From assembly GCF_006345805.1 (NCBI RefSeq), contig NC_043006.1, positions 52,142,001 through 52,206,000 of the forward strand: 64,000 nucleotides of DNA, given 5' to 3'. Positions 3,470 through 62,635 of the stretch are shown one piece after another (positions within the stretch are counted from its first letter, which is position 1; every line of letters begins with the position of its first letter). Made by a program: the position numbers and the translations under genes. This stretch comes from Octopus sinensis (Eukaryota). The notes under the pieces are model-generated. The model searched no databases. It had not been told where the DNA came from and saw only the letters and a program-made list of their open reading frames with translations.

Positions 3470-3689
3470 ATAAAGAAAAGATTCAGCGTGACACAGAAGG
3501 GGAAAAGCTGGCCGTTTAAAACAAAGGCGCTACTCATTTTTGCCAGCTGAGTGAACTGGAGCAACGTGAAATTAAAGTGTCTTGCTCAAGGACATAACGC
3601 ATCGCCGGGAATTGAACTCACAACCTTATGATCGCGAGCCAAATACTCTTAACCACTAAGCCACACACACTATATATATATATATATAT

Positions 3690-34130: not shown

Positions 34131-37100
34131 TGTCTCAAATTTTGGCATAAAGTGAGCAATTTTTTAGAGGGAAGCGGGGTGATTCATTACATTTGTCCTA
34201 GTACTTGATTGGTACTGTATTTTAGCAACCACCAAAGGGATATAAAGCAAAGTTGACCCCTGCAGAATTTGAACTCAGAATGTAATGAGTTAGAATAAAT
34301 ACCACTAGGTATGCTTTACTCTTTACATTTAGATATTCTCACATCTACATCTCTGCAGTTTAGTATGACAACTCCACCAACAGACCCAATTGGTCCATCT
34401 CTTCTTCTACTATAGCTTGGTTACACCATCCACTATATATGTACACCACTGTGCATTCACTAGCTATTTGAAGTGAATAGTGATAATCATAGCAAAATTG
34501 GGAAAAGATTCAAAACAAATGCTTGACTGATGAAGAGATGGCAACAAGAAAAAAAAACTTGGTTTTTATGAGGTTATTGTCTTCAAGGTGGTAGATGGAT
34601 TCTAAGTAGATATAGTACTGCATGCTCAGTGAGGTATTACTGTATCTGTTTAATCCTATGGGGTTCACTATCATTTATGCTGTTATGGCAAGTTATTTGA
34701 CAATATTCACTACAACACTATGGATTTTATAGAACTGTAGTAAGGATAAAGATTATTTATATAGAAAATTAGAATGGTTGATATGACTGTTTGCAAGTCA
34801 TATTAATGTTCGTTAACAAAGACTAAAGATAATGCAGTAGATGACTTCTTTTATTACTCATCATCAACAATCAACCGTTGAACGTTGGAGGTGTTAGAGA
34901 TAAGGAGTTTTTTATTATGATCAAAAAGGTTTGCCTTCTTGGGGATTCCAAAAGGGTTCCTATCAAAAACGGATTGACTAGTATAATTAGACATTGGTGG
35001 AGATAAGAGCTAATTCTGTACACTCTGGATAGGGGTATATTTAAATCTAAAGAATATAGCAACTGAGTAAGTTGAGGTGGTATCAGGGTGGAGTGTAATG
35101 TGATTGTGAAAACACTGGCATTGGAAGTTTAAAAAAAGTGTACTTACTTGGGCAGCAATATAAAGGATAACTTACCAATACAGAACTAGATTCATTAGTT
35201 TCCATATCAACATCACAAACAACTTCATCAGATGACATTGATTCTTCACTACCTACTTCATAATCATCATCTGGAATGGCAAAAATCATTAAACATTTTT
35301 CTTAACGGCCTATTGTGAAGTGTGAAAACCAAGGTTTATATATGTACTGAATAAACAGAAAGAACGATCAATACACACACACACTGTAGAATGAACAACA
35401 TGAAAGTCTGATAACTAATATAATTTACTCTTTTACTTGTTTCAGTCATGTGACTGCGGCCATGCTGGAGCACCGCCTTTTTAGTTAAGCAAATCGACCC
35501 CAGGACTTATTCTTTGTAAGCCTAGTACTTATTCTATCGGTCTCTTTTGCCAAACTGCTAAGTTACGGGGACGTAAACACACCAGCATCAGTTGTCAAGC
35601 GATGTTGGGGGACAAACACAGACACACAAACATATACACACACACACATATATATATATATATATGACGGGTTTCTTTCAGTTTCCGTCTACCAAATCCA
35701 CTCACAAGGCTTTGGTCGACCTGAGGCTATAGTAGAAGACACTTGCCCAAGGTGCCACGCAGTGGAACCGAACCCGGAACCATGTGGTTCGTAAGCAAGC
35801 TACTTACCACACAGCCACTCCTTTAGCCTCTAACATTGTTTTCGATTAATACAAAGTATAATGTATCTCCTGTACTGTGAAGAGAGAAAAGTTCAATTGA
35901 CCTTTAACCCTTCAGCATTTAAACTGGTCAGATCTGGCCAAAAGTATTCTGCCTGTTTTATGTTCATACTGGCCAGATCTGGTCTCTCACACCAACCCTA
36001 CAATATCGTTTTAAAAATTAACAGCTACCTCATCAAAATCTCATAGCTACAAGATAATGCATGATTACTTCAAAACAATGTGGATAAAAAAGCATTAATT
36101 TTGGCAGAATAATGCAAACACTAAAGGATTAAATCAAGAATACAGTCATTTTCACAGTGTAAGTTTTAAAATAAGTTTATTGTAACTCTGCTTAGAATCC
36201 CTGTGCTCTTGCTCCTATTCTACTTCGGTTATAGGGGCTCCTTAGAGTTGCATGAAAAGTACCCAGTATATTCTGTATGTGTGTACTTTAATAATGTTAA
36301 AAAATCAGGTAAAACTCAGTCATTCAGCAAACAGATTGGTAAAATAAGGTTCAAACTGAAATATGTACTAGGGTTGGTGCAATCAACTAAACACTTGAAG
36401 CTGGTACCTTTGCATGGTCGCAGATGTAACACAAACCTGCTTGCCTCAGTTACCTTGTCTGGCAAATACATTTATCAAACCTACTCACTCAAAAATCAAA
36501 TAATTAGTAACAGAAAAGATCCAATTTTAAAATTAAACCATCTTACACTCATCAATTTTTTATGAAGTCATCTTTTCAAATAGAAATATAGATTTTAAAA
36601 GAAATTGATTTGTTTTCAACATCTAGGATGACCTTTTTAACTGGTTGAAATCCTTCATCCTCAGCCGAAAGGAGGTAGTCACAGTTCTAGGACAGCACTC
36701 TACACCATATGAGATGTCATCGGGTGTACCACAGGGATCTGTCCTTGGTCCCCTCCTGTTTGTAGCATACATTAATGACATAGATGCCAATTTAAAGAAT
36801 GCCACAGTATTGAAATATGCAGACGACATCAAGCTGTACCTTGAAATCAAGAGGACTGATCCTGATGTCTACAACTCTTTCCTGCAATCAGACCTAGACA
36901 CAATGCAGCAATGGATCACAGACTGGCAACTGAAACTGGCTGTGGACAAGTGTACCACCATGCATTTTGGGAGAAAAAACCCTGCGTCCACATACTCCCT
37001 CCACAACACTGATATCAAGAAATCCTCTTGCGAGCGTGACCTAGGCATCACTGTCAGCAGTGATCTGCGTTGGACAAAGCATATCTCTAAAATTGTCAAG

Positions 37101-40100
37101 AAGGCCGAGGGTGTCTTGGCATCACTCAGCAAGACTTTTGTTAGCCGCTCTCCAGCCATCTATTTAAAACTGTATACAGCTATTGTACGACCACACTTGG
37201 AATTCGCATCATCAGTTTGGAATCCCTATCTTGCTCAGAACATTGACCTCCTGGAATCTGTCCAGAGACGTGCAACCAAACGCATACCCTCCATCAGACA
37301 CCTACCATATTCTGAGCGCCTTGTTTCCCTGGGCATGGTTTCACTGAAGCTCCGGCGTCTGGCGACGGACTTGGTAAATACCCACAAGGTTATCAACCAC
37401 CTCACCAACAACAACACTGAACACCTTTTTGATCTCCATGTGTCTAACACACGTGGACATGCCTACAAAGTCAGAAAACAACACAGCTCCCATGACTTTC
37501 GGAAACATTTTTTCACGCTCAGAGTTGCTGAAGCATGGAATAAACTGCCTGCGTCAGTTGTTGACTGCCATGACACTGCATCCTTTAAGGCCCTCATGCT
37601 TTCCGAAATCCGCCGAAACTACACCTGATTATATATACACTTTAGATGAGTTGTAGTGCACCTGAGCACTGTACACAATTATTATTATTATTATATCTAC
37701 TTTTAAATCTGTTCTGTTCAAGATTTGTTCTTTTGTTCAACCAAAAAGAAAAAACATCACATTGTAAGTGTATGAATCGTAAGAAAACCCCCAAAACTTA
37801 CCTTCAGAACATAAATTGGCAGCTATTTCTACAGCTAACTGTTGTGCCTTGAGGAAAGTTTCAGCATTTGCTATAATCTTATTGATCTCTGTGGTCTATG
37901 AAACAATATTATAATAGTTGAAATTACACTCAAATTATTAAGTAGACAAAAAAAAATCTAATAGGTGTTTTATTAATATATTGATACATATAAAATTAAA
38001 GTAAAAAATTAATGCCTTAAGCAACATCATCATCATTGTTTAACATTTACTTTTCCATGCTTGAATGGATCAGACAGAATTTTGTTGATGTAGATTTTCT
38101 ACAGCTAGCTGCCCTTCCTGTTGTCAATCCTCACGTGTTTCTAGGTGAGGTAATATCTCCCCATGGTTAGACATGCTTTTCACAAAATAAACAAACAGCA
38201 TGGCTTATATGATAATAATGTTTGTTTGTAACCACTATGTGATGTCAAGACAAGGCTACACATATAAACACATATATATTAAGGTGGAGCGAAAAATGCA
38301 ACTTTTGAAATTGGTAACCAAGAATTGATATTTTGTTGTGAATTAGGGTTAAAACAAAGGTGTGTAAAGAATTTTGTGGTTAACTACTTTTTCAGGCTTT
38401 GCAATGCAATTGAAAATTTGTTAAATTGACATTTTTGGTCGAATTTTGGATTTCATGGATTATAAATCATAATGAATACATATTTCTACATAGGCACAGG
38501 AGTGGCTGTGTGGTAAGTAGCTTGCTTATGAACCACATGGTTCCAGGTTCAGTCCCACTGCGTGGCACCTTGGGCATGTGTCTTCCACTATAGCTTCGGG
38601 TCAACCAAAGCCTTGTGAGTGGATTTGGTAGACGGAATACTACATGACTGGGAAGCAAGCTTCTTAACCACACAGCTACGCCTATGCCTTCTCTAATTAA
38701 CAAGCAGTCACATATACACCCGTTATCTATCACCACTTTGCATCCAGCAAGAATCATCAATATCTACCCAGATATACCTGTGTGAAGCATCTCTGAATCA
38801 CTCTCTTTACTCTGGCCTACAGGAGATACCTGTCTGTATTCCAATACTCCTGCAATATTTCTTTTTCCAAATCCCACACAAAACACTTTGTTCAATCCTC
38901 CTGCCTCACAGCTGCAACCGTCTGGAACACTATTTCTGCAAATATTCAAACTGAACACCAACCACATCACCGTCACCAGTCTAGACTATGGCTTGTAGAG
39001 GTCATGACAGCCACTAACCCTCCTTCTTAGCAACATAATTAAGCTCAAAACAGTTGCTATATAGCATGACCAAATAGACCAATGTAAGTAGTCAACTGAA
39101 CCACTAGGTGCAATCTTAGGACTGATAGCTCCAGATATGCCATGGGATGCAGTGTTGCATTCTTGTCCTGTTTGACTCTATATGTTTGTAAATTAAGGTG
39201 GTGCCCACAACAAGGATAATCTACTGAATTCAATTCAAAAGAAACAACTACCATAAATCCTCGAGTATAGACCGCCCTTGAGTATAATATGCAGGGGATT
39301 TTTAGGGGGCTGTACCTTTGAAAAACCTAAACCTTGTGTATAATTTTGACCTTTAAATTTTAGGAAAAAGGTGCGGATTATACTCGAGGATTTACAGTAC
39401 TTCTCATCACTTACTGGTGCTGTGCAGTCCAGCACACTGATGCTATTGCTGCAGCTGCCAATCTTATTATATATTTATATATGATATATATTTACAAGGC
39501 AACCTCTATATGGTTACCTAAATTGCGAGAAATAGTAACAAACTTCTTCAAACATAATCTTAACGTCTTAAAACTGGATAAGTATACGCAAAACTACAAA
39601 TTTCATGCTTCGAAATCAAGGGCAGTAACTCTCTTATTTTAATTTAAAGATTTATAAACCTTAGTATTCTCGCGATCAGACTTGCTGTTTATAGTTCATG
39701 GCTACAAATAAATATGCATGTTGTTCATTTACTGTATATTAAGACATAACAAAATGAAATATAACACTATGGTGCATCACTATTAAATATTTCTAAACAT
39801 TCAGTTATACTCATATACTGTTTACTTTCCAGACATTACTGCATATGCTTTATAGGTACTTTTTGACAAGTTGTGGTGCACCTGAGCACTGTATACAATA
39901 ATTTCATCATTATTATTATTATAATGATTATAACTTTTACAAATACTCAAGACATTATTAGCCTTATGTGGGTGAAGACGTTCTTTAGCCTGGGATGCTG
40001 GTGTTTCTCTTTTCCCTACCCACTGTCTTTGACACTTGACATTTTTATAGAAAACCCATTTCTCATCACCTGTCACTATCCAGTCCAAAAAAGGTTCAGT

Positions 40101-43100
40101 CATAAGAATATGACAGCAAAAGAGAACACACATTCACTCTCTGCACGTGAAAGTTTGAGAGGAACCCATTGATCCAATTTGCTGATCTGTCCGATGGTCT
40201 GTGGGTGTTGATGAATGGTTGAATGACCAAATCTAAGCTTCTCTGCTAGTTCCTCAAAAGTTACGATAGGATTTTGTTCCACCAGAGTTTGCAGGACGTC
40301 CTTGTTGAGTTCTACAGATCTTCCAGAATGAGACTTGTCTTCTAGGCAGCAATTTCAAGCTAAGAATTTCTGGAACCACCGTTAACACTGGCTTATTGTC
40401 TGATCCCCATACACTGCATTAATATTCCTGGCACTTTCTGTTACATTGTTGCCTTTATTCAACTCATAAAGCAAAATATGCCAAATATACCCCTTTGTCA
40501 CTTCCATTATAGCTTTGAAAAAATAACTGTTAAAATCGAAACTGCACTAACAATAAGGACAAGGTAAAATTACTACCTGCTTTTATAGCAAGTTGATGCA
40601 GATAGTTTATCCCATCCCCCTCCAACTTTTAGTTCATGCAATTGAAAAAAACCCCACATTATTTATGGGATGACCCAATATTTTATAGAGTGTACTGGGT
40701 GCATTTTATCATGGAATAAACATTAGAGATCTATAAAGACTTCTAGTACACTTCTACTTAAATTGTATTGAGCAGCTACACATGCAATATAAAAAGTACA
40801 ACAAAGGTAACAATGACTTCATTAAAAAATAGAAGTATTTCTTATAAAATAAAAGTACTCTTTTTGTGCTGTCATGTCATTAGGTATCATCATCATAGTC
40901 GTCGTTGTTTAATGTCCGCTTTCCATGCTGGCATGGGTTGAATGGTCTGACTGAGGACCAGCAAGCCAGGAGGTTGCACCAGGCTCCAATCTGATCTGGC
41001 GAGCTTTCTACAGCTGGATGTTCTTCCTAACGCCAACCACTCTGAGAGTGTAGTGGGTGCTCTTTACATGCCACTTGAATGGTGCTTTTTACATGCCACT
41101 AGCACAGGAGCCAGTCGGGCAGCACTATATGTTGGGCTCAAAACTTGGAACACCCCGGATATATATATATATATATATAAAACATATATATACATATATA
41201 TATATATTAAACATATATACATATATACATATATATATATATATGTATATATATATAAAACAGTCTAAGATATCTTTTCTACATTTTGCATTATAAATCT
41301 TGAATAATTAATCTCACCTTGTCAACTGTTGGTTCTACCTTTTCAGTTGTTCCATTTGTCTGCAATTCATATATAAAGTAATATAACAAACCTTTACTTT
41401 TAGTAATAAACTTGAACTGAAATGTTTATTATATTCTCAAATAAAATCTGCTAAAAGATATTATTTGAAGAACTGATTCAAGAGTTCTGTTCTATAGTGA
41501 ACTCTTGAATTACTACATAATAAACTAAATGAATGTTAAAATATTATTATTATTATTATTTCGAAGCTTATTTAAGAATAACAATGGAATTTATACTGAT
41601 GGATAATTCAATACAGACAACAGAGTAAGTTAATTCTAAACTACATGTTCACTTGGACTTTATGACAATGAACTAAGTGTCTATCTTCTAGCTTAAAATC
41701 AAGACTATATTAAGCCTTAAAAGGCTACATCTCTGAATAAGGTGATGTGCTGCAGATTTATACAACTCATTTCGCTATAGAAAAAACAAAGTAATATTTC
41801 AATCAAAAATGATGATAAAAATAAAAGACTAAATGATTTTCCTTTCTGTTTGCTTCGCAGGTTTAGCCAACTTCTTTGAAGTCACAGCAGAACAATTTCC
41901 ATCTAGTGTCAGGTGGCTGTTGTCATTTTAAACTTAGATCTGCATTGATTAAGTAAACCATTGATCAAAGATATTCCAGTCGTGATTCTATTTATTTTTT
42001 TCATTTATACCTTTGACCACAATGTCTGTGTCATTTCATTTTTTTAAGATAGTAGCATGTGATATGAGGGTGATTCAGCTGTTATTTCTTGCATGAGTGA
42101 CCTTATACATGCTTTCTTGAAGGTCAGCCAACTAAGTTACCAAGTATTTTGCTTCACATTACTTTTATTTTTATTAATTTATAATTTCTTTTTGTAATTT
42201 GACTCTTATCAACAGATACTGCAGTAAGTCACTTAAAATTAGAATGTTAAAAATAGCTATTGTTGTTTGTAGTGAGACATTAGCAAAGCTTTAGGCAAGG
42301 TATTGTACATACTTTGGCAGCTAAAATGTAAGAAAACAAAGAGAATGAATCCTCTACACATTGAACCAACTGGAAATCTGAGTTTACAGAGGCAACATAA
42401 AATTATCATAAATGTGAAGCAATACCTACAAAAACTTTTCCAGTCAACAAAAAAAATGTTATAATGAGATCGAGTGAAGACAGTAGCTGAACAGATATCA
42501 AATTACCATTTAATATTGTGAATTCTTACTGACTGTTCACATGTAGTCTCTCATCTTTCAATAGTACACTTAATTCTACATTACATTATTAGAAATGAGA
42601 AACAAGTTTATTCGGAAAAGTTGCCTTGCAATAAACTAGCGTGTTATCCAAAAAGGAATTTGTCACTTATTTAATACCAGAAAAACCAGATAAAAGTGTT
42701 GACTGTATGAATTTAGACTAGTTTATGACAGCTTGTTTTATAATAAATTAAAATCAATTACTGTATATAATTAGACAAACCTCATCATCACACTAAACTC
42801 AAAAACCAACATCCAGTTTATTTGAGGATAGTGTGGACTGGATGGATTTGCAGTATAAGATAATTTTATTCTTCACAGTCCTCTGACATGATTATGATGT
42901 TCAACAATTTCAGATTGAACCTTGGCTCATCTCTATCCCATGCAACCTTAATTATCACTTCATGAGAACTAATATATATATGGTAAGTAATAGATACATT
43001 AATACACATACAAGGCAATTAATACACACATGAGGAAGTAATAGACACATGATAGCAACAAGGTAGAGTGATGATCAATACCACTATTCAGTATAATGGA

Positions 43101-46100: not shown

Positions 46101-49100
46101 TTTTTTTTTTAAGTACATATATAAAGATGCAGGTACCAGTTAGATCTTTGTCTGAGAGCTAAATTAACCCATGGCATCTTATACAGCTTGACAGACAAAG
46201 CTATTGAAATGATATTTACCTTGACCATGGATATATGGACCATAGAACAATCAATTCAATATGCTAATTAGTTCAGCCAGTTGCCACCATCATAACAACA
46301 TTACAAATATAAAAACAAAAATGTCTCAAAAGTAGATTAGACCAATAAGTTAATGTAATGAAACAACTGGTGGAGTATGTGGAAAGCTTAATACAGAATT
46401 ACTAATGAAGATGAGGAGAGAAAACTTACCACTTCAGCCATGGGCATCATTGCTTCATCTAACACATCAGTTACCTACAATCAAAACAAAATTACAATTA
46501 CTGACATCAAACATAGCAGTTCTACACACACATGTATGTATGTATATATATATATATATATGTATATATAGAGAGGGGGAGAATTCACAAAAAAACAAAA
46601 GATGAAGACAGGTGGTGTAGACAACAAACAGATGTAGTAGTATAACGCTTGGGAAGTGGAAAAGTCTTTAACGTTTCGAGTCTACGCACTTCCAGAGAAA
46701 GGGACACAGAAAGAAACAAGGAGAGAAAATTATATATATATACACACACACACACCAATTCTCCTATTCAATGTGAGGGTATATCCTGACACATCTTCAC
46801 CACCATTCTTCTTGTCTTCTAACTGGGGCAACCATGTATATCCCTGACAGCAAAACATCTGTTCCTGTCCCCTTATCATACTTCAATATCTCATCACCTG
46901 CGGGTGGCACGTAAAAAGCACCCACTACACTCACGGAGTGGTTGGCGTTAGGAAGGGCATCCAGCCGTAGAAACACTGCCAGATTTGACTGGGCCTGATG
47001 AAGCCTTCTGGCTTCACAGACCCCAGTAGAACCGTCCAACCCATGCTAGCATGGAAAGCGGACGCTAAACGATGATGATGATGATGATGATGAGATAAAG
47101 TCATCTCATTCAATACTACTCAACCCTCCACCCCTCAGGTGAGGCATCCTGTCTGGCAAATTACTTGGTACCATGTAAAAAGCAACCAGAACACTCTGTA
47201 AATTGGTTGGCATTAGGAAGGGCATCCAGATTTAAAAACAATGCCAAAGCAGACACTGGAGCCAGCTGCTGTCGAACCGTCCAACCCATGCCAGCATAGA
47301 AAATGCATGTATGATGATTATGAAGATGATGATGATATATAGTTAATCCTTTCAAATCTATCACATCGTCTAAACACTGTTTAATTTTATACTCCTGTGA
47401 TGCTTGTTTCCATTTAACAAACAGAGAATTACAGGCGTGGTAGCTGCCATCAGTAAAGTTAACTACATTAACAGAGTAAATAATTTTGTGCAAATAATCT
47501 TGTACAATGGCAGTATTTAGACTGAAAATGTTAGAGTCGAACAGTCCAGTATTTAATACCTCAACTGTTGATACTTTCAATAAAGTCTCCAGAGATAAAC
47601 ACTAACAACAGCCAAGCCAATGAGGAAACATCCATGTTGCCACTCAACCTGCAAGAAAGAGCAATCAAATTTCCCTCAAAATAGCATGCTACTATTTTAA
47701 AACAGCAAGAACATATTGGATTGTAGTATGAGATGCTTGTGACTGAAATACTTTTAATCACCTAGAGCTCAACAACAACAACCACCACCACCAGCTTTAT
47801 AGACAGACAGTAAATGAGATAAACTATAAAGAAACTTGTCGGCAGCAGCTTCATCTCATATCCAAGAATTTAATTTCTTCACTGATTGCTTCCTTTACGG
47901 TGAGAGACTAAGTAGACCAATTCTTACATTGAAGAGTCGATGGCATTGACTGCATGATAATAATAATGAAATAATTGCATACAGTGCTCAGGTGCACCAC
48001 AACTTGTCAAAAGTGTGTATAAAGCATATGCAGTAATGTACAAATGTCTGGGAAGTGAACAGTGTATGAGTCAGATACATGCTTGCATATGTATGGAGAG
48101 GAGAAAATCAGGTTAGTGTTGGCAAATCTCAGGAAGCATGGAAGTTTTGAAGGATGCAGTGCTCCAACAACTAACAGCTGATGCCAGCAGTTTGTTCCAT
48201 ACTTCAGCAACTCTTAGCATGAAAAAATGTTTCAGAAAGTCATGGGAGCTGTGCTGATTCCTGACTTTTTAAACATGCCCACGGGTGTTTGACAGGTGGA
48301 GTTTGAAAAGGTGCTTAGAGTCATTGTTAGTAAGATGGTTAATAATTTTATGGGTGTCTGCCAAGTCAGCTGCCAGACGGCAGAGTTTCAATGTATCCAT
48401 GTCCAGGGAAGTAAGGCGTTCAGAATATGGCAAATGCCTGATGGAGGGTATTCTCTTGGTTGCACGTTACTGAATGGTTTCCAGACATTTAATATCCTGG
48501 GCAAGATAGGGGTTCCAGACCGGTGATGCAAATTCCAGGTGAGGCCGGACCATGGCTATATAAATCCTCAGATAGATAGCCGGAGAGCAGCTCACAAAGG
48601 ACTTGGTAAGTGTTGCCTAGACTCCCTCAGCCTTCTTGGCAATTTTACCAATGTGTTTTGTCCAATGCAAATTGCTGTCAACAATAATGCCCAGGTCATG
48701 TTCACAAGAAAACAATTTGAGATTAGTGTTGTGGAGGGAGTAAGTAGACGCTGGGATTTTCCTCCCCAAATGCATGGTGGTGAAGGATGAGTTTGATTTT
48801 GTTGAGCCTTTCTCTCCTGTTGTTTGATTTCTTACTTTTCTCTTCTGATGGCTTCAAAGATTTCAGTTCCAATGATGATGAAATACCACCTGTTGGTATG
48901 TCTCAGGCTTGGGTTTCAAATGATTTAGGCTCAAGTCCAGTGACTTTCAGTGTTATTTTGAGTTGGTTCTTGTATCTACAAAGGTGAGCTCACTGACTAA
49001 GACTTAACATAAAATCTTTGACTCTTCCATTCTCACTACATGCCCTGACCATTGAAGATAGTGTTCAAAGTCCTATAAAGAAACTACATCGATATTAAAC

Positions 49101-52100
49101 AGAAAAAGGAGAAAAAAAATTTAGTTTGCTAACCTGTAAAGCAACCACTTTATCAGCTTCTGATATTAAATGTTCATGTGTGTTTATTGCCAGGACATCG
49201 GCAATTGTGGAGAGGATAGGAGAAACAAGATGACCACTAGCAGTGCTCAGTTGGTCTCCAAACACATTCACCAAGAGACCTATAAAATATTACAAATTTA
49301 AAACAAAAAAATTTCTTTTCTGGTGAATTGTTTGGAAAAATATCTTATATCTTTCATACATTGAATAATAACATATCTCACTTTATGATACATTAACAAT
49401 ATCTCATTTTATACATAACTTTATGACGTACTAGTGTATCTCACTACATACCGGTTTTAATATAAATATAAAAATACTAAATGTATTTCAGTGTTTCATC
49501 AGCTGCTTCTGTTTTACGACTACTTGTGACAATTGATGGTGATGGTCATAGTAGGATGGAAATATGCACTTTGACACTTCACAATTCAAATATGGAGTAA
49601 GGGTTAGGGTTAGGGTATATATGATATACTATAACCTTGGGCACCACACAATGACCTCAAGGTTTGTGATACAGTAATACATTAGAGTATGTGCTCAAAT
49701 ACTGATTCAGTAATACATATAATATAATCACATTATCCAACTCTTTCGTTACCTCTAATCGTTTGCCACACAACTCTCACTCAGAGCACTTACCTACACA
49801 TCCATCTTTTCAGTTCCTCCATCCTATTTTCTATCATATTCACATTATACCTTGACCTCACATTTCTCTCTCTCTTTCTAGATAACACAAGCCATATGTT
49901 CACCTCTTCAGTAATGCAAGGTGGCAAGCAGGCAGAAACGTGAGCACACCGGGTGAAATACTCAGCAGTATCTTGTCTGTCTTTACGCTCTGAGTTCAAA
50001 TTCCACCAAGGTTGACTTTTCCTTTCTTCCTTTCGGGGTCGATAAATTAAGTACCAGTTATGCTCAAGGTTTGATGTAATCGACTTAATTCCTTTGTCTG
50101 TCCTTGTTTGTCCCCTCTATGTTTAGCCCCTTGTGGGCAATAAAGAAATAAGAAGTAATGCATCTGCTCTTCTATCCTATTTACCTATTCCTCAATTCTA
50201 TGCCCTTCTCAGTCGAGGGGTCCTGTCTTGCAGGTACTTAGAAGCCTCACCATACAGGTGCCACATTAAGAAGCACCCACTATACTCTGTGAAGTGGTTG
50301 GTATTAGAAAGGGCATCTAGTTGTAGAGACCAAGGGGACATGTGGAGGCACATGACTTAGTGGTCAGGGGTGTTGGACTCATGATCATAGGATTGTAGCT
50401 TTGTATTCCTGGACCAGGCAACGCATTGTGTTCTTGAGCAAAACACTTCATTTCATGTTACTCCACTCTACTCAGCTGGTAAAAATGAGTAATCCTGCCA
50501 CAGACCAGCATCCCGTTCAGGTGGTGAATATATAAGCCATAGAAACTGGGAAACTGGCCCTTATGAGTCTATCTGACTCAGGAAGGAACTATTTTTGTAC
50601 TTTATCAAGCAAACATTAGAACTTGGCGCAGCATTCTAGCTCATCTGTGCATGTTGAATCACCCAACCCATACCAGCATAGAAAAAAGGAAGTTACATCA
50701 TCATCATCATCAGGCGCAATAGTGGCTGTGTGGTAAGTAGCTTGCTTACCGACCACATGGTTCTGTGTTCAGTCCCACTGCATGGCACCTTGGGCAAGTG
50801 TCTTCTACTATAGCCTAGTAGTGGATTTGGTAGACGAAAACTGAAAGAAGCCTGTCGCATATATGTATGCGTGTGTATATGTTTGTGTGTCTGTTTTTGT
50901 CCCCCAACATCGCTTGACAACTGATGCTGGTGTATTTACGTCCCTGTAATATAGCGGTTTGGCAAAAGAGACCAATAGAATAAGTACTAGGCTTACAAAG
51001 AATAAGTCCTGGGGTCGATTTCTTCGACTAAAGATGGTGCTCCAGCATGGTCACAGTCAAATGACTGAAACAAGTAAAAGAGTAAAAGGAGTAAAGAGTA
51101 TGCATGAATGCATGATGATGACAATGATGATGACGTAACCTCCCTTTTTCCATGCTGGAATGGGTTGGATGAATACATATAGTCAAATCCTGTCCAAGTG
51201 ACTAACCCATGCCAATATGGAATACAGATATTAAATGATGATGATGATGATTGTGGTGGTGGTGGTGTTATCTGGAGGAAGAGAGGACTGTGCCAATGCC
51301 CATTTTCCAGCCCCTCAGAAACTATAAATACTGTCATGGTTAACATTTCTTTTTAAACATGGTGCCAGCCAATGGTTGCAATAGAGACATGCAGGGAAAG
51401 AAATCCAGTGCACCAACATTCTGGGGAAGAATTATTAGACTTAGTGCAGAGTGGCTGTGTGGTAAGTAGCTAGGCATAGGAATGGCTGTGTGGTAAGTAG
51501 CTTGCTTACCAACCACATGGTTCCAGGTTCAGTCCCACTGTGTGGCACCTTGGGCCAATGTCATCTACTATAGCCTCAGGGTGACCAAAGCCTTGTGAGT
51601 GGATTTGGTAGACGGAAACTGAAGTCCAACGTATATATGTATATATGTGTGTGTGTTTGTGTGTCTGTTGTGTTTGTCCCCCCAACATCGCTTGACAACC
51701 GATGCTGGTGTGTTTACGTCCCCGTAACTTAACATTTCGGCAAAAAAGAGACCAATAGAATAAGTACTAGGCTTACAAAGAATAAGTCCTGGGGTCGATT
51801 TGCTTGACTAAAAGGCGGTGTTCCAGCATGGCCGCAGTCAAATGACTGAAACAAGTAAAAGAGAAGGAGAGAGAGAGAGTGAGGTAGATGGATACAATAT
51901 GGGTGACAAGGAAAGGATGGATGAGTAGCAAGTCCTTGAGAGGAGGTGGTACAAAACCAGCTCACTCTGAAAAGCAGAATTTACTGTATAAGTAATAGAA
52001 AAGGTAGAGGGATGTGATAGCATGTCTGCAGGCCAGAGATTAAAGTGACTTAATGTTAATCTGTTAAGTGGCTTTTCTATGATTGTGATCGTTAGATGAT

Positions 52101-55100
52101 TGTATACAAGCAGCACTGTCCCTAATAAGGAAGCAATACTCCAAGCTGAAGCATGTACTAACTCTGAAAAGGAAGGTTAGCCTTTATAGTTAAGTTTTGA
52201 TTATACTCTTTTACTTGTTTCAGTCATTTGACTGTGGCCCATGCTGGAGCACCGCCTTTAGTCGAGGACCTATTCTTTGTAAGCCTAATATTTATTCTAT
52301 CAGTCTCTTGCCGAACCGCTTAGTTATGGGGGACAAACACAGACACACAAACACATATATGACAGGCTTCTTTCAGTTTCCGTCTACCAAATCCACTCAC
52401 AAGGCTTTGGTCGGCCTGATTCTATAGTAGAAGACACTTGCCCAAGGTGCCACGCAGTGGGACTGAACCCAGAACCATGTGGCTCTTAAGCAAGCTACTT
52501 ACCACATAGCCACTCTTACGCCTATTATGCTGAGAATGTGCATAATAGATATCTTCACAGATGGTGAGGCATTGCATTCATAGCTACTTTGAAGGTTTCA
52601 TTTGTGTGCTATTCATGTTGGAATAGAGAACGGGAGAGAATGTTTTCTTGAAATGTGTAATAATTGTGTCTTATTGTTAAAGGAGGTTAGACTGGTATAA
52701 TTCTATTTGAAGATATTTTCGGGGTCACCTTTCTTGGAGTCAGTGCAGATTCAACATGAAGTATCTAGATTGCATATGAATGATACTTGGGTGCAGAAGA
52801 CTGGAGGTGAATGAAAAATAGTGTCACCTATATAGAAATGGACACCATTAGAGTTGAAGACAAGTAAGACACATTAGTGTGCAGAAGGCAGAGTGTGGTG
52901 AGGGACAAAACCAAACCCTGAGTGTTGGTAGAGTATAGGAGGGAGAGAGAGAGAGAGAGACTCATCAACATAAACAGCAGTGGTCTAATCTGATAGGAAG
53001 CCAGCAATTTAAGAGAAGAGAGATGGATGAAGCCAAAACATGTGAGTACCAAATATAGTTAAAAGAATAGGTGGTCAAACACTACTAAAAAGAGACTAGG
53101 TTAAGTAACCAAAATGTATATTCCAGCTGTTATATTATATTATCAGAGTACAATAAGTTAGTAGATTTCTGGTACTGCTCATTGAATAATGTATCCCACT
53201 CACAGAAATTACTGGAAAGAATTTACATTCACAACTAATAAACCAGTAAATAAAGAATCAGGTGTACAGAGGAAGCCATGAATAATCAACATGGATAATG
53301 TTATCAAAGACTTATTATTATAAAAATTTTCATTCAAATTAACCAGGAGTGGCTGTGTGGTAAGTAGCTTGCTTACGAACCACATGGTTCCGGGTTCAGT
53401 CTCACTGCATGGCACCTTGGGCAAGTGTCTTCTATGATAGCCTCGGGCCGACCAAAGCCTTGTGAGTGGATTTGGTAGACGGAAACTGAAAGAAGCCCGT
53501 CGTATATATGTATATTAATATGTGCGTGTGTGTGTATATGTTTGTTCCCTCAACATCGTTTGACAACCGATGCTGGTGTGTTTACATCCCCGTAACTTAG
53601 CGGTTCGGCATAAGAGACCGATAGAATAAGTACTAGGCTTACAAAGAATAAGTCTTGGGGTCGATTTGCTCAACTAAAGGCGGTGCTCCAGCATGGCTAC
53701 AGTCAAATGACTGAAACAAGTAAAAGAGAATATTCATTAATTTTATCATATCATTCTATTCTACTTCATCAGTTATCTTCAAAGTTGAGAGTAGGTAAAG
53801 TACTATCCATGGTGCTTTTGTTTTTCCCATGTAAACAATGTGAGAGCTGCGGTTAATAAATACCCTCTCCCTATGGTAATAGTGAGTTAAAAATGTAACA
53901 TTTTATCTCAACAAGGAAAAACTAAAAATATCAGGGAGCTATAAGTTACCCAAAATAAGTCAGAGCAGTATTCATTTAAAAAATCCACAGTAACTATCAT
54001 ATAAGATATTAGAAAAACAGGCCAGACACTGGAAAATTAGCACTTACTAATGAGAATGTACATCATAAGAAAGAACAATCTGGTAAAAGTTTTCAAACTG
54101 AGTCAATATTGAAAATTAGGTTTGGCAATGTTCAAAAAAGAATGCTTCAATTAATGGACAACTGACACATCAACCAGAAGAGAAATTTACAAAAGAAATG
54201 GGTAAAGAAAATCTCACAAAATAAGGTACAAAAAGTGAAAGAATATTGTGTACAAGCACATACATGGTGAAAAAAGAATGTGCTGACATCTTATCAGCTA
54301 GTGAAGATTATGACAAAATGGCCAAAAATGGAAAAAAATGAAGTGAGTTCATGGCTCGCAGGACGGCTTGCTGTGCTAATATTGAATCGTAGGGTGACCC
54401 GCTGTGCTTGAGGAGACCTATTGAGTCAAGTATGTAAACATCAACAGCAAAATAAAAATCAAATGGAAATTGTAGTTATGATACCCGTGCTGGTGGAACG
54501 TAAAAAAGCACCATCTAAACGTGGCTCATGCCAATGCCGCCTGACTGACATCTGTGTCGGTGACACGTAAAAAGCACCAACTGATCGTGGCCGTTTGCCA
54601 GCCTCCTCTGGCCCTTATGCTGGTAGTACCTAAAAAGCACCCACTACACTCACAGAGTGGTTGGCGTTAGGAAGGGCATCCAGCTGTAGAAACACTGCCA
54701 GATCAGACTGGAGCCTGGCACAGCCTCCTGGTTTCCAAGACCCCAGTCGAACTGTCCAACCCATGCTAGCATGGAAAACGGACGTTAAACGATGATGATG
54801 ATGATTATTATCCTATTTACAATGCAACAAAACAAGGCTTTATTTTCATGCAGTGCTTGAGCATTCTTAATTGTTTAGCCCTTAAGTGTTTAAACTGGAA
54901 AGGTCTAACCTCTCACACCTACACTACAATGCCATTCTAGAAATAAACAATCCATTATTTAAATCTCAAAGGAATGAGATAATGCATGATTAATTCAAAA
55001 CAATCTGAATAAGCAAGCATTACATTTGACAGAATGCTAAAGGGTAAAAATAAAAAAAGCAAAGGAATTAAATCTTCAAAAGAGCAAATGACAGTTCTTG

Positions 55101-58100
55101 ACGAAGGGACAGAAATGAGTTTCTAATGATTGGAAAAAGCAAAATTCTTTAGTGGATTAAAGGGCCATTGAATAAATCATCCTGTCCACAGACAGAATGA
55201 AATGATTGTAATGGATTTGAACTCACAATAAACCATAAGGAATTAGATGGGTTGGGTGCAACACTTACAATGTATCAATCTAATCAGAAGACTGAATCAG
55301 AAATAAATTCAACATAATCCTACTGAAATAATGGCTGTGGTGTTTTGATTAGCTTTAAAAATAACCAATTATTTGGAGTTTTAGTAAAACAACTAACTTT
55401 TTCATAATTAAGATGGTGATTAGAATATAATGAAAATTGAGATAAAAGTTTATAATTATATGCGAGCACTTAAATAAGAGGTTTTATATTATAGAACCAG
55501 GAGCAGATTTATGTGGCTTTGTATCAAAATAGCTAAACTGGATCTCAGAAGAGAAACAAATCTATACCAATTTCTTCAAAAAGACCACAAAATAAAACTT
55601 TTTATATTTGATGTGTATAGTGAAAAGAAAAATTATTGTAAATTGAAAGGATGCAAGCTGGGTCACATACCTGCAGCTACAGCACGCAAAAGTAAAGCAT
55701 CCATTGAACTTGTGTTAATAGTAGTCAAGGACTGGATCTGAGAGAGTGGTTCATCATTTCGTAGATATGTGCATACTTCAGGGTTGCTATCAGTGACAGT
55801 GTGTAAGCAGTGAGCTGATAGAATAAAAATATGTAACCTTGTATAGTAATGAGCTGGTCATAAAAATAGTATATTATACAGCAATAAACTGGAATAACAA
55901 AGAAATTTCATGACACTGTTTGGGCTGGTATAGTAATGATATTATATTACAATATATAATTATGAGCCGGTCATAAAGACAATATGTTACATGATGCAGC
56001 AATGAGCAGGTATAGTTAAGACAATACATCATACAGTATAATAATATAATAATGAGATAACATTACATCATAAATTGGGCTGGTATAGTAAAGATATTAT
56101 ACTATCCTATATTTTAAAAATGAGAAATTATATACAATATTTACATTGGATGGATAGGTGTCCTCACCTTGTTTGATTACTGGGGTACTCTGTTCTCATT
56201 CCTAAGGATTTTAATTTCCTTTTTTTTTTGCTGATGTTATTGTTATTATTTATTCAGGTCACTGACTGGGATTGAACCCGGAATCTTGGGGTTAGTAGCC
56301 CACGCTCTAAACCACTATGCTATATGCCCATGGGCAATTATAGAGTGAATTTTAGGGCTTATAAACCTATCATTTTTATATCTTTCCTTAATACCGGTTC
56401 CCATATTCTACTCATATCTGCACTAGGTTTGTTTAGGAAGTAATTGTGTCCTAGTATATGTGCTGCCTCTTTTAGTTTTCGTATTTTCCAGTGGTGTTCT
56501 GTCTATTATTTTAACTTCATCCCACAGGGGGAAAATAGACAGAGAACACCACTGGAAAATATGAAAGCTAAAAGAAGTAGCACATATGCTAGGACACAAT
56601 AACCTCTTAAGCAGACCTAGTGCGGATATGAGAAGAATATGGGAAACAGTATTAAGGCAAGATACAAAAATTATAGGTTTATAAGACCTAAAATTCACTC
56701 TATAATTGCCCACACGCATATAGCATAGTGGTTAAGAGCATAGGCTACTAACCCCAAGATGCCGGATTCAGTCCCAGTCAGCGGTTTGAATAAATAACAT
56801 CAGCAAAAACGAAAAAATAAATAAATACCCCAGCATTCAAATAAAGTGTAGGATTCGAAGGCTGGAGAGTACATCAACCGAAAGGTTGTGGTAACAACAA
56901 ACAAGGTGAGGACACCTAACCATCCAATGTAAGGACACAATAGCAAATTGTGTAGCAAACACAATATATAACATTATACAGTGTGGGCTAGGAAAAATAT
57001 AAAATTACATTATATAGTAATGAACTTGCAACAAAGATGTTATATAACATTATATACCAATAACCAGCTGTTCTTGGGGAGACCTATTGAGTCAAGTATG
57101 TCAACACCAACATCAAAATAAAAATCAAATGGAAATTGTAGTTAAGACACCCGTGCCGGTGACATGTAAAAAGCACCGTCCGAACGTGGCAGATGCCACT
57201 GACTGGCGTCCGTGTTGGTGACACGCAAAAGTACCAACCGATCGTGGCCATTTGCCAGCCTCCTCTGGCACGCAAAAAGCACCCACTACACTCATGGAGT
57301 GGTTGGCATCAGGAAGGGCATCCAGCTGTAGAAACACTGCCAAATCAGACTGGAGCCTGGTGCACCCTCCATGGCTTACCAGACACCAGTCAAACTGTCC
57401 AACCCATGCTAGCATGGAAAACGGACGTCAAATGATGATGATGATGAAGTTAGTCACAAACATCATACCCCAATGAGGTGGGATATTAAAAGTATATTAC
57501 ACTATACAATAAATGGCAGGTAAATGTACATAACAAACAACAATAAGCAGGTAAAGTTTAAAAGCAACCAGTACACTCTGTAAAGTGGCTGGCATTTGGA
57601 AGGGCACCTAACTGTAGCAACCATGCCCTTCAGCTGGTCAGCTTCTGTAAAATCGTCCAACCCATGCCAGAATAGAAAGTGGACGTTAAATGATGATGAT
57701 GATGATGATGATGAGTGTAATGGGTGCTTTTACGTCCCACCAGTATCTATCACATAATACAGTATAATTACAGCAAAGGCTACTGAAGTAATGTATACAC
57801 CAGTTAAGAAAGATATATTTCACTTCAAGTTAGAAAATGTTGCAATTAACATCATTTGAGAAAGTAAAGATCGTTCAAAAAGATCAGTTGTCCAAGTAAG
57901 TTAATTTACTCCAATAGTATTATACATAAGTGCAGACTGCACTACATCAAAGACAGATGGTAGAATTCTGCTAGATGACAGTACAGATTGTGCTAGACGA
58001 CAGTGCTGATTGTGGGAGCATATTCAGTATGTTCCAATAACTAATCTTAATGAATTCTCTGCAATGCTTGGTGTCAACATAATCCCTTCCTTGTTTAATC

Positions 58101-60206
58101 ACAACTGAAGCTGAAAGTTTCATTATGTTTATAACAATGGGTGCAAAGATAAAGCTATGGGTGCCTAGGTACTATGAGTGCAAAGCTATAGCTATGGATG
58201 CCATGTTATAGCTAAGAGTGCTAAGGCTGATAATGACAGCAAATGTGCTATCTGTAGTTAGTGAAATATAAAAAGGTAAACTATAGATATAAGCTCCTAA
58301 TATATAGCTTAAGATAGGGCAATGAGCAAGTAGAACTGTTAGCACACTGAGTAAAATACTTAGTGGCTTTTCATCTGTCTCCATGTTCTGAGTTGAAATT
58401 TTGCCATGGCTGACTTTCCTTTCAGGGTCAATAAAATAAGCACCAGATGAGTGCTGGGGTCAATCTAATCGACCTACTCCTCCCTTTAAATTGCTGGTCT
58501 TGAGCCAAAGTTTGAAATCAATATATAACTTAAGGTTTAGAGAAAATAATATAACTTTAAAAGAGAAGGACTATTCAATGAAAGTCTTGTCCAGTGACAC
58601 AGCGCTGGTTGTAACAAAGGTTGGGTCAGTAGTCTAGGTTACAACTTTGCAAATATTTTGTATCTCTCTTCAGAATTTATTTAACCTTTTAATGAACATT
58701 GTAAATAATGAGATAACGTCTAAGATATGCCAAAGGGATATCTCAACTGAGATATAACACTACAAATATTGTTGTTATATACCAACTGTTGATATTGATT
58801 AAAACACTTAAAAAACAAAGATCAGAAACACTTACCCACAGCAAGTACTAAAGGATAACCATAGATACTGGGGTTCAAACAATACACAAGAGGATGGGCT
58901 AATTTTTCTTTGTTGAATATTTGAACAGCTGTCTCTGAATTTTCACTGTAATTAAAGTAAACTGTTTTGAAAGGTCATGATGATGGGAAAAAAATATTTT
59001 AAACCAATGTAAAATCGTCATGTATCTTTTAAATATCATAGAAACTAGACAAACATATTTGAAAGGTAGATGAAAGAAACTAAAAGTGAAATAGTTATGA
59101 TACAGAACATAGGAATGTGGAACTAACCATAGATTCCATAAGAGATGAACAGCTTGAATAAATGTATCAGTTTTTAATTGAGCCAACTTTTCATCCCATA
59201 ATTTTGAAGGTTCCCAGCCAACTTCATACTAAAAGGTAAAAATAACATTCAAGAACAGTGTTTTATATGAAAGCTACAATGGCAAACTATGTTTCATTAG
59301 TAGACCATCAAAAAATGACAGAATTTATCTGAGCACAGAATAAATTATGCAAACACAATGTGAATAAATGAAGAAGAATGACATTAGAACAATAATGTCA
59401 AGATACTAAAATAAGGAGCTTAGCTGAGGTAAAAGGGTAATTAAGTAATACAAAGAAAGAGAGAGGGAAAAACATAGCTGTCATTGTGCTTGTGTAAAGT
59501 CTGTAAGACGACCCCTTCATGTGTACTTATACATGATATTCTAACCAACATTGTGCTGATGCCATGAAAAGTGCACCCATGCCGGCACCACATAAAAAGC
59601 AACCATGCCAGTGCAATATTAAAAGCACCCACATCAGTGACACATAAGAGGCACCCATGCCAGCACTGTGTAAAAAGCATCTATGCCTGGCACCACATAA
59701 AAGGCACCCAGTACACTCTGTAGTTGGCATTAGGAGGAGCATTCAGCCATATAAACCATGCTAAAACAGATGACTGGAGCTTGGTGCTGACCTCCAGCTT
59801 GTCAGCGTGTGTCAAATTACCTAATCCTCATCAGCAAGAAAAAAAGGACATTAAATGATGATGATGATGATGATAGAGAAATATTATCATCAGCCATGTG
59901 CCCTCCTTGTGTCCAGGGGTTGGTTTGCCAAGACTCTCCAGTCTCGTGACTGGTTGCTTCTATTTGGATATCATTGGTATTTCTTTGTGAAACATAGGAG
60001 TGGCTGTGTGGTGAGTAGCTTGCTTACGAACTACATGGTTCCGGGTTCAGTCCCACTGTGTGGCACCTTGGGCAAGTGTCTTCTACTACAGCCTCGGGCT
60101 GACCAAAGCCTTGTGAGTGAATTTGGTAGACAGAAACTGAAAGAAGCCTGTCATATATATGTATATATATATATACATACATATATATACACACACACAT
60201 ACACAT

Positions 60207-60274
<68 letters not shown>

Positions 60275-62380: not shown

Positions 62381-62635
62381 GCCGGTGGCACGTAAAAAGC
62401 ACCATCCGTCTGTGGCCATTTGCCAGCTCCATCTGGCACCTGTGCGGGTGGCATGTAAAAAGCACCCACTACACTCACGGAGTGGTTGGCGTTAGGAAGG
62501 GCATCCAGCTGTAGAAACACTGCCAGATCAGACTGGGCCTGATGCAGCCTTCTGGCTTCACAGACCCCAGTTGAACCGTCCAACCCATGCTAGCATGGAA
62601 AGCGGACGCTAAAAGATGATGATGATGATGATGAT
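62381..62635 (+). mobile_element. RTE-type 3' end (family D)
   Basis: Diagnostic motifs, (GAT)n tail. Confidence 0.78.

Follow-up and report, generated by a model that had tools for sequence, protein, structure and literature searches.

The sequence at positions 56141-56932 of the window (the whole stretch of 64 kb that was analysed) is a hairpin-shaped element of 792 bp that lies within an intron of a gene resembling HEATR3/SYO1. The element has no coding capacity, and both of its arms contain modules homologous to tRNAs and to the heads of SINEs. The best explanation, with a probability of roughly 0.55, is a dead copy of a cut-and-paste DNA transposon which was non-autonomous and non-coding and belonged to the fold-back (long-inverted-repeat MITE) type, with a SINE-derived passenger in its arms. 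The repeat as such is ordinary, but its passenger is uncommon.

Structure, target site and copies of the element

A fold-back element had originally been predicted at 56141-56932, and its main structure comprising TIRs, arms, spacer and fold was confirmed. The following features of the element and its surroundings were found:

55671..55814, minus strand: neighbouring host exon, acceptor AG at 55816-55815, donor GT at 55670-55669
56116..56120, minus strand: first T5 run downstream of the left tRNA-like unit, in the flank; sole nearby Pol III-type terminator
56141..56175: left TIR, TTACATTGGATGGATAGGTGTCCTCACCTTGTTTG, 34/35 complementary to 56898-56932
56142..56143 (left) and 56930..56931 (right): candidate TA target-site duplication (TSD), from a direct-repeat scan
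56176..56221: left subterminal segment, without detectable homology to the right one
56331..56507: left inner arm, upstream of the left tRNA-like unit, 87% identical to the right inner arm
56508..56533: central spacer, hairpin loop
56534..56711: right inner arm
56822..56897: right subterminal segment, exceeding the left one by 30 nt
56898..56932: right TIR, pairs with the left TIR

The TIRs have the predicted length of 35 nt and are 97% complementary. A 22-nt terminus occurs in the 64 kb at the two element ends only, with a chance expectation of 0.01. The arms (56222-56511 and 56532-56821) comprise ~290 nt each, are 84% complementary in an ungapped comparison and lie 20 nt apart. Near the centre there is a 2-nt indel, and pairing then reaches ~56507/56534 so that the spacer is 26 nt; the predicted arms of ~260 bp and spacer of ~27 nt were close to these values. 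The predicted arm identity was 85-90%, compared to 84% (ungapped) and 87% (inner arm). Many transitions had been noted, but there is no strong excess of them, since the 46 mismatches between the arms comprise 27 transitions and 19 transversions, with only 7 of the 46 at CpG sites.

The element does not form one continuous palindrome as had been assumed. By part, the identity of the two halves is 87% in the inner arm, 84% in the head, 69% in the A-rich tract and 46% in the subterminal segments. The latter comprise 46 nt on the left and 76 nt on the right, their alignment has 19 gap columns, and no homology between them was detectable by local alignment against shuffled sequences (p = 0.12). A seamless palindrome is thereby ruled out. 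Homology of the two halves ends after the A-rich tracts and returns only in the terminal 35 nt (97% vs 46% in the adjoining sequence), which is the pattern of transposase-binding TIRs and not that of a uniformly decaying duplication. By itself, the conservation of the TIRs is unexceptional, since a stretch of 40 nt with one mismatch also exists inside the arms (56331-56370). The probability of at least 34 matches in 35 positions at the rate of the arms is 0.018 (about 0.02-0.04), a weak argument because the test is post hoc.

The fold of the minus strand, i.e. the sense strand of the host gene, has an MFE of -479 kcal/mol compared to -184 +/- 7 kcal/mol for shuffled sequences (z = -42.8), which bears out the predicted long duplex. 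No tandem repeats were found by TRF within 56141-56932. A Drosophila-type Foldback (FB) element was rejected, as the long arms of tandem subrepeats are absent. No protein relatives of the six-frame translation were found, and exact look-ups of three ORFs of the window, the longest ORF of the element (98 aa) among them, gave no record. In its small size of 792 bp, its TIRs and its lack of coding capacity, the element agrees with MITEs.

The host gene was recognised on the minus strand by a match of its concatenated exons to the Pfam family TPR_SYO1 (PF25567; 79.3 bits, E = 4.3e-22), in agreement with the HEATR3 intron proposed before. A protein search with the concatenated exons gave no match, and no HEATR3 relative was found in the PDB. 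The element is located 326 nt upstream of the exon 55671-55814(-), where ~330 nt had been predicted.

With the candidate TA TSD, the element proper would start with CATTGG (56144) and end with ...CCAATG. This call is almost weightless, as TA is its own reverse complement, is the same as an extension of the TIR and lies in AT-rich flanks. A competing imperfect 8-nt repeat (7/8), ATACAATA at 56132-56139 and ACACAATA at 56935-56942, is displaced by 1-2 nt from the TIR tips. Depending on the TSD, candidate superfamilies would be Tc1/mariner or PIF-type (TA/TWA) or hAT (8-bp repeat). The two flanks represent one degenerate AT-rich repeat continuing on either side of the element, which fits an insertion.

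The window contains one copy of the element; a search with the left inner arm using nhmmer gave no other match in the 64 kb. No second element with the same TIR, and thus no autonomous partner as had been envisaged, was found in the window with up to three mismatches in the terminus. Remnants of mariner-type transposases at 33.2 kb and 39.8-40.4 kb indicate that TA-inserting transposons once lived in this genome; the terminus of the element was not matched at these remnants (up to three mismatches). When metagenome, prokaryotic-genome and viral collections were scanned for exact 18-21-mers of the TIR, head and inner arm, nothing or only chance matches of 18-27 nt resulted, and sequence strings of the element had no match in literature text. 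A mixed TE query retrieved distant RT relatives only, the best with 61% identity on a 3-kb metagenome contig.

The tRNA-like units

Each arm contains one tRNA-like unit followed by an A-rich tract:

56220..56257, minus strand: A-rich tract after the left unit, T-rich on the plus strand, SINE-tail-like, 69% identical to the right tract
56258..56330, minus strand: left tRNA-like unit, 20.8 bits to Rfam RF00005, nhmmer matches to SINE heads
56269-56278, minus strand: left B box GGTTCAATCC, fits the consensus at the usual spacing
56292-56298 (minus) and 56745-56751 (plus): anticodon-type loop CTACTAA
56312-56322 (minus) and 56721-56731 (plus): A box TAGCATAGTGG, identical in both arms
56712..56785, plus strand: right tRNA-like unit, 84% identical to the left one, more decayed
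56764-56774, plus strand: right B box GGATTCAGTCC, degenerate
56786..56828, plus strand: A-rich tract after the right unit

The A box, the CT-ACT-AA loop, the left B box and the absence of an acceptor stem were all found as predicted, and judged by sequence the A and B motifs have the spacing of tRNAs. The prediction of twin Pol III cassettes with a tRNA-like unit per arm holds for the motifs, which are present in both arms, but the B box of the right unit is mutated and only the left unit is recognised by the tRNA model. The left unit scored 20.8 bits with the Rfam model RF00005 (threshold 29; E = 0.02 in a 121-nt search), the match covering only model positions 7-64 without the acceptor stem, whereas the right unit gave no match at E <= 10. 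ARAGORN called no tRNA in the window or in the element, at default or mildly relaxed thresholds (-ps). True tRNA genes can thus be rejected, as there is no full cloverleaf, the Rfam score is below the threshold and ARAGORN made no calls; by the same scores the suspected mis-annotation as tRNA genes is unlikely. Also, the suggested identity Ser(ACT) has no meaning here. Ser tRNAs belong to class II with a long variable arm, whereas the variable region of the units has ~5 nt, and at an 85% threshold ARAGORN reported Thr(AGT) in a different register. For annotation, the two heads should not be listed as tRNA genes, and the locus should be masked as a single composite repeat and not as two SINE fragments.

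Within the window, the units are related only to the heads of the tRNA-derived SINEs, which are abundant there. The left unit matches these heads with E-values of 6e-4 to 0.05 (nhmmer), and the heads of at least eight SINE copies are matched, a weak but significant homology. This supports, at the level of sequence, a tRNA-derived, SINE-head-like nature of the modules in both arms. A derivation from the main SINE family of the window was rejected because of an identity of only ~60%.

Compared to tRNA-derived SINEs, including the family of the window, the spacing of the A and B boxes, the cloverleaf without acceptor stem and the A-rich tract after the head are alike. Despite this tract, the layout differs from that of a SINE with a head at the 5' end, a tail and bounding TSDs, as the heads are located inside the element at distances of 117 and 147 nt from its ends, the ~180 nt before each head are also duplicated, and there is no TSD at the head-tail unit. 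The Twin SINE of Culex also has two tRNA-related units in one short repeat; it is a retroposon with the units in tandem (direct), whereas here they are inverted and lie within TIRs.

Origin of the element

The description as SINE-like heads in a DNA-transposon-like palindrome remains valid with respect to the TIRs, the non-coding nature, the fold-back and the outward-facing heads, and has to be corrected in that the palindrome is not seamless. For the transposon reading we infer the following course. A tRNA-derived retroposon unit (head and A-rich tail) would have come into one half of a small TIR element, and this half would then have been copied in inverted orientation, e.g. by template switching in gap repair, giving rise to two copies facing outward. 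A transposase recognising the 35-bp termini probably mobilised the composite in trans, and the latter would have landed in the AT-rich degenerate repeat within the HEATR3/SYO1-like intron, where subsequent decay may have reduced the likeness of the arms to the present 84%. As no TSD of at least 6 nt was found to flank either the 600-bp inner palindrome or a head-tail unit, the SINE-insertion step is suggested by homology alone.

Fold-back or long-TIR MITEs of the Tc1/mariner group have been described, such as the PALTA1_CE-type, CeleTc1/Tc7 and CeleTc2/5 elements of C. elegans and Goblin of mosquitoes, and an origin of fold-back MITEs by template switching was proposed and documented (PMC3814204). 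The element resembles them in being non-coding and shorter than 1 kb, with short conserved termini and one hairpin; a TA target is possible, and the origin proposed for it is likewise that one subterminal region was copied in inverted orientation through a template switch in gap repair. In contrast to the single copy analysed here, those families were defined from many copies, some with an autonomous partner, and the two subterminal segments of the present element are not homologous. None of the fold-back MITEs in that study was described with tRNA-like modules (PMC3814204).

Among the alternatives, an unlikely one is a nested composite present at this locus only. A MITE of ~190 bp, made up of the 35-bp TIRs and the 46-nt and 76-nt segments, would have been invaded by, or would enclose, the 600-bp palindrome 56222-56821. 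The palindrome would represent a single A-tailed retroposed sequence present twice in inverted orientation, the tails facing outward, and resulting e.g. from snap-back (hairpin) cDNA synthesis in target-primed reverse transcription or from a local inverted duplication, so that the hybrid would be a nesting accident and no family would exist. The homology of the halves indeed stops precisely where the A-rich tracts end on their outer side, the palindrome is bounded by a T run on one side and an A-rich run on the other, which is what two tails would give, and the shell minus the palindrome has a typical MITE size. However, there is no target duplication of at least 6 nt around the palindrome, and in an older shell the divergence of the TIRs should equal or exceed that of the arms, whereas the TIRs are more alike (97% vs 84%; p about 0.02-0.04, post hoc). 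Moreover, the 180 nt upstream of each head contain nothing resembling a promoter or a tRNA by which an RNA of this kind could be explained.

We regard as rather improbable that no transposon was involved and that an intron segment with a SINE-like retrocopy underwent a one-off local inverted duplication, e.g. by a replication template switch. The TIR would then be no more than what survives of the palindrome at its outer ends, and later indels in low-complexity DNA would account for the lack of match in the subterminal segments. The single copy in 64 kb, the lack of a convincing TSD and the gradual drop of identity from the centre to the AT-rich, slippage-prone subterminal segments are in line with this. 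It is at odds with the return of near-perfect homology for exactly the last 35 nt, past 46 and 76 unalignable nt, and with the sharp ends of the palindrome at TA dinucleotides inside a repeat which runs on both sides.

We consider the chance to be small that the element represents a decayed copy from an actual family of fold-back DNA transposons with a tRNA-derived Pol III module fixed in both arms. Such a family would be the TIR-element counterpart of the LTR-based TRIMp3 class, i.e. Helenus, Ajax and Cassandra, which are non-autonomous LTR retrotransposons whose two LTRs each contain a promoter derived from a tRNA or from 5S; this promoter is thought to come from a SINE insertion in one repeat that was later copied to the other (PMC10886601). 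TRIMp3 elements have direct LTRs, move via RNA, use the Pol III promoter for transposition and show boxes conserved across copies, whereas the present element has inverted repeats, would move as DNA if at all and shows no sign of box conservation. A literature search turned up no TIR elements comparable to TRIMp3. In such a family the cassettes might be retained because of chromatin or TFIIIC effects, or might be a source of new SINEs originating at MITE ends. If copies of the same build exist, the capture of small-RNA-gene promoters by non-autonomous elements, known so far in SINEs and small LTR elements, would extend to cut-and-paste elements, and the locus would be a concrete case of part exchange between SINE and MITE lineages. 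Highly improbable is a functional hybrid family with active Pol III promoters in both arms as DNA-transposon counterpart of TRIMp3, its cassettes being selected e.g. as TFIIIC or chromatin-boundary sites or as small-RNA sources: the identical A boxes, the consensus left B box at its usual spacing and, as a precedent, non-autonomous elements whose terminal repeats both contain a small-RNA promoter (PMC10886601) are opposed by heads whose conservation between the arms (84%) does not exceed that of the adjacent sequence (87%), the mutated right B box and failure of the right unit in the tRNA model, the absence of a terminator within the element, and the fact that cut-and-paste transposition requires no transcript of the element.

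Pol III potential and duplex formation

Both units are oriented outward, away from the centre of the palindrome. Their transcripts would therefore be like-sense copies of one another and form no duplex, so that the promoter motifs and the hairpin are two unrelated properties. The hairpin can arise only from read-through of the host pre-mRNA and not from the Pol III cassettes. Judged by sequence, short outward Pol III transcripts are the most that the A and B boxes could direct. No Pol III terminator was found inside the element. A transcript predicted from the left unit would comprise ~215 nt and end at the T5 run 56116-56120, and downstream of the right unit no TTTT occurs on the plus strand before 57728, i.e. 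~940 nt without a terminator. Most likely, the element has no activity at present.

The centre of the element (56457-56595) resembles several TE-type miRNA hairpin models with E-values down to 1e-7. The Rfam miRNA families concerned (mir-3910, MIR6425, mir-3914 and others) were rejected, as the best score was 44.7 bits compared to a gathering score of 95, which marks these hits as generic long-hairpin matches. Made1 MITEs are the hairpin precursors of mir-548 (PMC1784062), and inverted Alu pairs are ADAR substrates (PMC526178). In common with both, the element is a palindromic repeat in a transcribed intron giving a long intramolecular duplex; in contrast to the Made1 precursors, its stem of ~380 bp is far longer, its miRNA hits are below the gathering scores, and it is known from sequence alone. 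In the host pre-mRNA, the modelled duplex of ~380 bp would be a generic substrate of ADAR or Dicer. Site-selective editing can be raised by a nearby intronic hairpin (PMC3479170), and given the position 326 nt upstream of an exon, it is plausible that hyper-editing or the formation of small RNAs would take place at the predicted duplex in the host gene.

Layered structure and intronic position of the element

The element, a fold-back structure of 792 bp at 56141-56932, shows inverted symmetry in layers. Between its two ends, 34 of the 35 outermost nucleotides are complementary (terminal inverted repeat, TIR; 56141-56175 and 56898-56932). A scan of the window for the 22-nt terminus TACATTGGATGGWTAGGTGTCC with up to three mismatches permitted yielded two sites, i.e. 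both ends of the element, with 0.01 expected by chance. The inner inverted repeats, here called arms (56222-56511 and 56532-56821), comprise 290 nt each and are 84% complementary without gaps; close to the centre, a 2-nt indel is followed by further pairing to about 56507/56534, leaving a 26-nt loop. For RNA of the strand transcribed with the host gene, a minimum free energy of −479 kcal/mol was calculated, compared with −184 ± 7 kcal/mol for shuffled sequences (z = −42.8). The window has a single copy of the element, with a G+C content of 38%, equal to that of the surroundings. In its essentials the original prediction was correct, while the many transitions it saw in the arms were not found as such: mismatches comprise 27 transitions and 19 transversions, and 7 of the 46 are CpG sites.

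Identity between the two halves of the element
Terminal 35 nt: 97%
Subterminal segments (56176-56221, 46 nt left; 56822-56897, 76 nt right): 46%, with indels
A-rich tracts: 69%
tRNA-like units (56258-56330, minus strand, left; 56712-56785, plus strand, right): 84%
Inner 180 nt: 87%

The left and right subterminal segments had no significant similarity in local alignment against shuffled sequences (p = 0.12). Together with the identities of the other segments, this gives the order TIR, unique left segment, 600-bp palindrome, unique right segment, TIR.

For the host gene, minus-strand stop-free stretches at approximately 55.7, 35.2, 25.8, and 19.8 kb were joined and matched Pfam PF25567 (SYO1-like TPR repeats; E = 4.3e-22). 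SYO1 is the yeast counterpart of HEATR3; therefore, the predicted location in an intron of a HEATR3-type gene stands, with the gene on the minus strand.

Exons of the host gene (SYO1/HEATR3-like)
19680-19860, minus strand
25780-25900, minus strand
35100-35250, minus strand
55671-55814, minus strand

Comparison of exon boundaries with splice signals was restricted to exon 55671-55814, which has an acceptor AG at 55816-55815 and a donor GT at 55670-55669. Relative to transcription of the gene, the element has its left end 326 nt upstream of this exon, in agreement with the roughly 330 nt expected for the duplex.

tRNA-like units and repeats of the window

Both arms carry an outward-facing A box TAGCATAGTGG, a 7-base loop CTACTAA, and a B box, which is GGTTCAATCC on the left and a degenerate GGATTCAGTCC on the right; an A-rich tract, about 40 nt long, comes directly after each of these tRNA-like units. 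In a 121-nt search, the left unit matched the Rfam tRNA model with 20.8 bits (positions 7-64; E = 0.02), short of its gathering score (29). In this match, the D, anticodon, and T arms were discernible with one flaw apiece, and the acceptor stem was absent. The right unit gave no tRNA-model match at E ≤ 10 and, being 84% identical to the left one, is regarded as its more decayed copy. Thus, of the twin tRNA-like units proposed, the motifs are present in both arms, while only the left unit is recognizable by the model.

ARAGORN detected no tRNA in the window. Within the element, lowered thresholds did not change this, and only at 85% of the normal thresholds was a Thr(AGT) call forced, in another register. 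Serine tRNAs belong to class II with a long variable arm, whereas the variable region of the unit comprises only about 5 nt. The Ser(ACT) identity suggested earlier therefore carries no weight. The units were also rejected as tRNA genes in general, being below the Rfam threshold, lacking an acceptor stem, and not called by ARAGORN.

In a profile search against the masked window, the only part of the element with relatives was the head, i.e. the tRNA-like unit. It matched the head in at least eight copies of the abundant tRNA-derived SINE of the window and one other SINE head (E = 6e-4 to 0.18; about 60% identity); neither the outer parts of the element nor its inner 180 nt had a match in this search. 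These modules are therefore SINE-head-like and tRNA-derived, yet an origin as copies of the local major SINE was rejected at about 60% identity. The window is dense in repeats, including two SINE-like families of about 16 copies each.

Repeats in the window
3251-3462, 16926-17150, 17784-17975, 18271-18479, 35626-35822, 38497-38637, 51478-51690, 52351-52515, 53345-53560, 59996-60172, among others: tRNA-derived SINE, about 16 copies, 76-92% alike
54434-54804, 57100-57480, 11728-11890, 15837-16017, 30673-30928, 46905-47084, 62384-62628, among others: second SINE-like repeat, about 16 copies, 69-90% alike
33187-33438 (plus) and 39825-40354 (minus): mariner-type transposase remnants (HTH_48, E = 9e-9; Transposase_1, E = 8e-4)
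36645-37628 (plus), 48272-48853 (minus), and 3-446 (minus): CR1-type LINE pieces
5592-6230 (minus): 212-aa ORF with Pif1 helicase 2B domain (E = 1.5e-15)

In the tRNA-derived SINE, the head is GGAGTGGCTGTGTGGTAAGTAGC...GGTTCCGGGTTCAGTCCCAC, and a TA/CA microsatellite usually comes after it. A third tRNA-like SINE head at 3603-3665 (minus strand; RF00005, 23.4 bits, below the threshold of 29) fits the tRNA model better than the units of the element do and has the A-box region TAGTGGTTAAGAG in common with them. One copy of the second SINE-like repeat is separated from the right end of the element by only about 170 nt, and open frames of this repeat could pass for exons. The CR1-type pieces comprise a 327-aa reverse transcriptase (RT) ORF (RVT_1, E = 1e-17), a second RT piece, diverged and C-terminal, and, at the edge of the window, part of an endonuclease; with a mixed transposon query, RT identity in the protein collection reached only 61%. 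The Pif1 helicase ORF is probably a Helitron-type remnant. Both mariner-type remnants are interrupted by stop codons and indicate that TA-inserting transposons were once present in this genome; the element terminus was not found elsewhere in the window, the vicinity of these remnants included.

Probable origin and possible integration

The best-supported reading is that of a dead, non-coding fold-back or long-inverted-repeat MITE-like DNA transposon with a SINE-derived passenger in its arms. Fold-back MITEs are well documented, as are MITEs whose autonomous relatives have far shorter inverted repeats, e.g. CeleTc1/Tc7 and the palindromic PALTA-type elements in C. elegans; for mosquito Goblin, the origin was worked out as template switching in gap repair with inverted copying of one subterminal region (PMC3814204). 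A head-plus-tail retroposon unit located in the copied half would be placed once in each arm, facing outward, as in the element. Conceptually, the closest precedent comes from LTR elements of the TRIMp3 class, where both terminal repeats carry a module derived from a small RNA; a SINE insertion in one LTR was presumably copied to the second (PMC10886601). The element is best filed as a known fold-back MITE-like kind, its passenger being what is unusual. Of the SINE/DNA-transposon hybrid originally envisaged, the transposon-like palindrome, the SINE-like heads, and the HEATR3-type intron are retained; the element has no tRNA genes, and neither a Pol III device nor a family could be demonstrated.

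Alternatively, a composite unique to this locus could consist of a MITE shell of about 190 bp around a 600-bp palindrome of two inverted A-tailed retrocopies. Homology indeed breaks off exactly at the A-rich tails, but no flanking duplication of ≥6 nt was found around the palindrome and the TIRs are better kept than the arms. A one-off local inverted duplication with subsequent indels would account for the single copy and the identity gradient along the halves; it is at odds with the sharp ends and the clean 35-nt terminal block. Beyond the unalignable subterminal segments, near-perfect homology returns abruptly for exactly these terminal 35 nt, which looks like a transposase-binding TIR rather than a uniformly decayed local duplication. 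At the match rate of the arms, 34/35 would have a probability of 0.018 in a post hoc test; a 40-nt stretch with one mismatch is also present within the arms (56331-56370). A family that is functional and conserves its Pol III promoters would explain the intact A boxes, but the heads lack differential conservation and cut-and-paste elements require no transcript of themselves.

Pattern scans for the element in metagenome, prokaryotic-genome, and viral collections gave chance matches only. Host exons and the six-frame element as protein queries had no relatives, exact look-ups of window ORFs no record, and sequence strings no match in a literature text search. If the window is of octopod cephalopod origin, as its SINEs may suggest, the divergence of the arms, about 8% per arm, would be near the burst of TIR elements reported in Octopus vulgaris at a Jukes-Cantor distance of 0.09 (PMC13282606), a comparison that is not relied on here.

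Regarding the proposed MITE-like insertion, the flanks 55820-56140 and 56933-57060 form one degenerate AT-rich repeat with recurring motifs, e.g. ACAATAT and TGGGCTGG, which fits insertion into an older array. Target duplications were sought as direct repeats abutting symmetric boundaries, and two candidates were obtained. The first is TA at 56142-43 and 56930-31, the element proper then being CATTGG...CCAATG; since TA is its own reverse complement, a duplication here would look no different from a longer inverted repeat. The second consists of ATACAATA (56132-39) and ACACAATA (56935-42), direct repeats of 8 nt that differ at one position and lie 1 and 2 nt off the TIR tips. The ACAATA motif is repeated within the local flank repeat, and because this AT-rich repeat is present in both flanks, short flank repeats are unreliable as target duplications. 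As a first guess, Tc1/mariner is a candidate superfamily, with PIF/Harbinger (TWA) and hAT (8 bp) also possible. A motif ATTGTGTCCT, akin to ATACAATA/ACACAATA, is located in the left arm (56444-56453) and its reverse complement lies across the right junction; this recurrence may be chance or a local motif.

Putative transcripts and predicted intronic duplex

Nothing indicates present-day activity of the element. The heads are not more conserved between the arms than the adjoining sequence (84% vs 87%), the right B box is mutated, and no T4 run follows either head within the element. The terminator of the left unit would be a T5 run in the flank (56116-56120) with a predicted transcript of about 215 nt; for the right unit, the first TTTT follows only after about 940 nt. 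Judged by these features, the cassettes do not demonstrably have a Pol III function. As they face away from the centre, their transcripts would be like-sense and not complementary to each other; the hairpin is thus beyond Pol III, and both arms are present in the host pre-mRNA only. If a genome-wide family had cassettes conserved in both arms, interest in the element would grow.

As a general inference, the predicted intronic duplex would be a generic ADAR and Dicer substrate; such use of intronic duplexes is illustrated by inverted Alu pairs and Made1/mir-548 (PMC526178; PMC1784062), and an exon site can be edited more strongly when an intronic hairpin lies nearby (PMC3479170). Several miRNA hairpin models matched the central part of the element, with E down to 1e-7. 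With a best score of 44.7 bits against a threshold of 95, membership in a miRNA family was rejected, and these hits were read as generic long-hairpin matches. Elsewhere in the window, (TA)n and (CA)n microsatellites (60191-60272, 11890-11965, and 1308-1386, among others) also gave seemingly strong, yet sub-threshold, matches to many miRNA models, e.g. mir-3149 with 78 bits vs 100, which were rejected as low-complexity artefacts.
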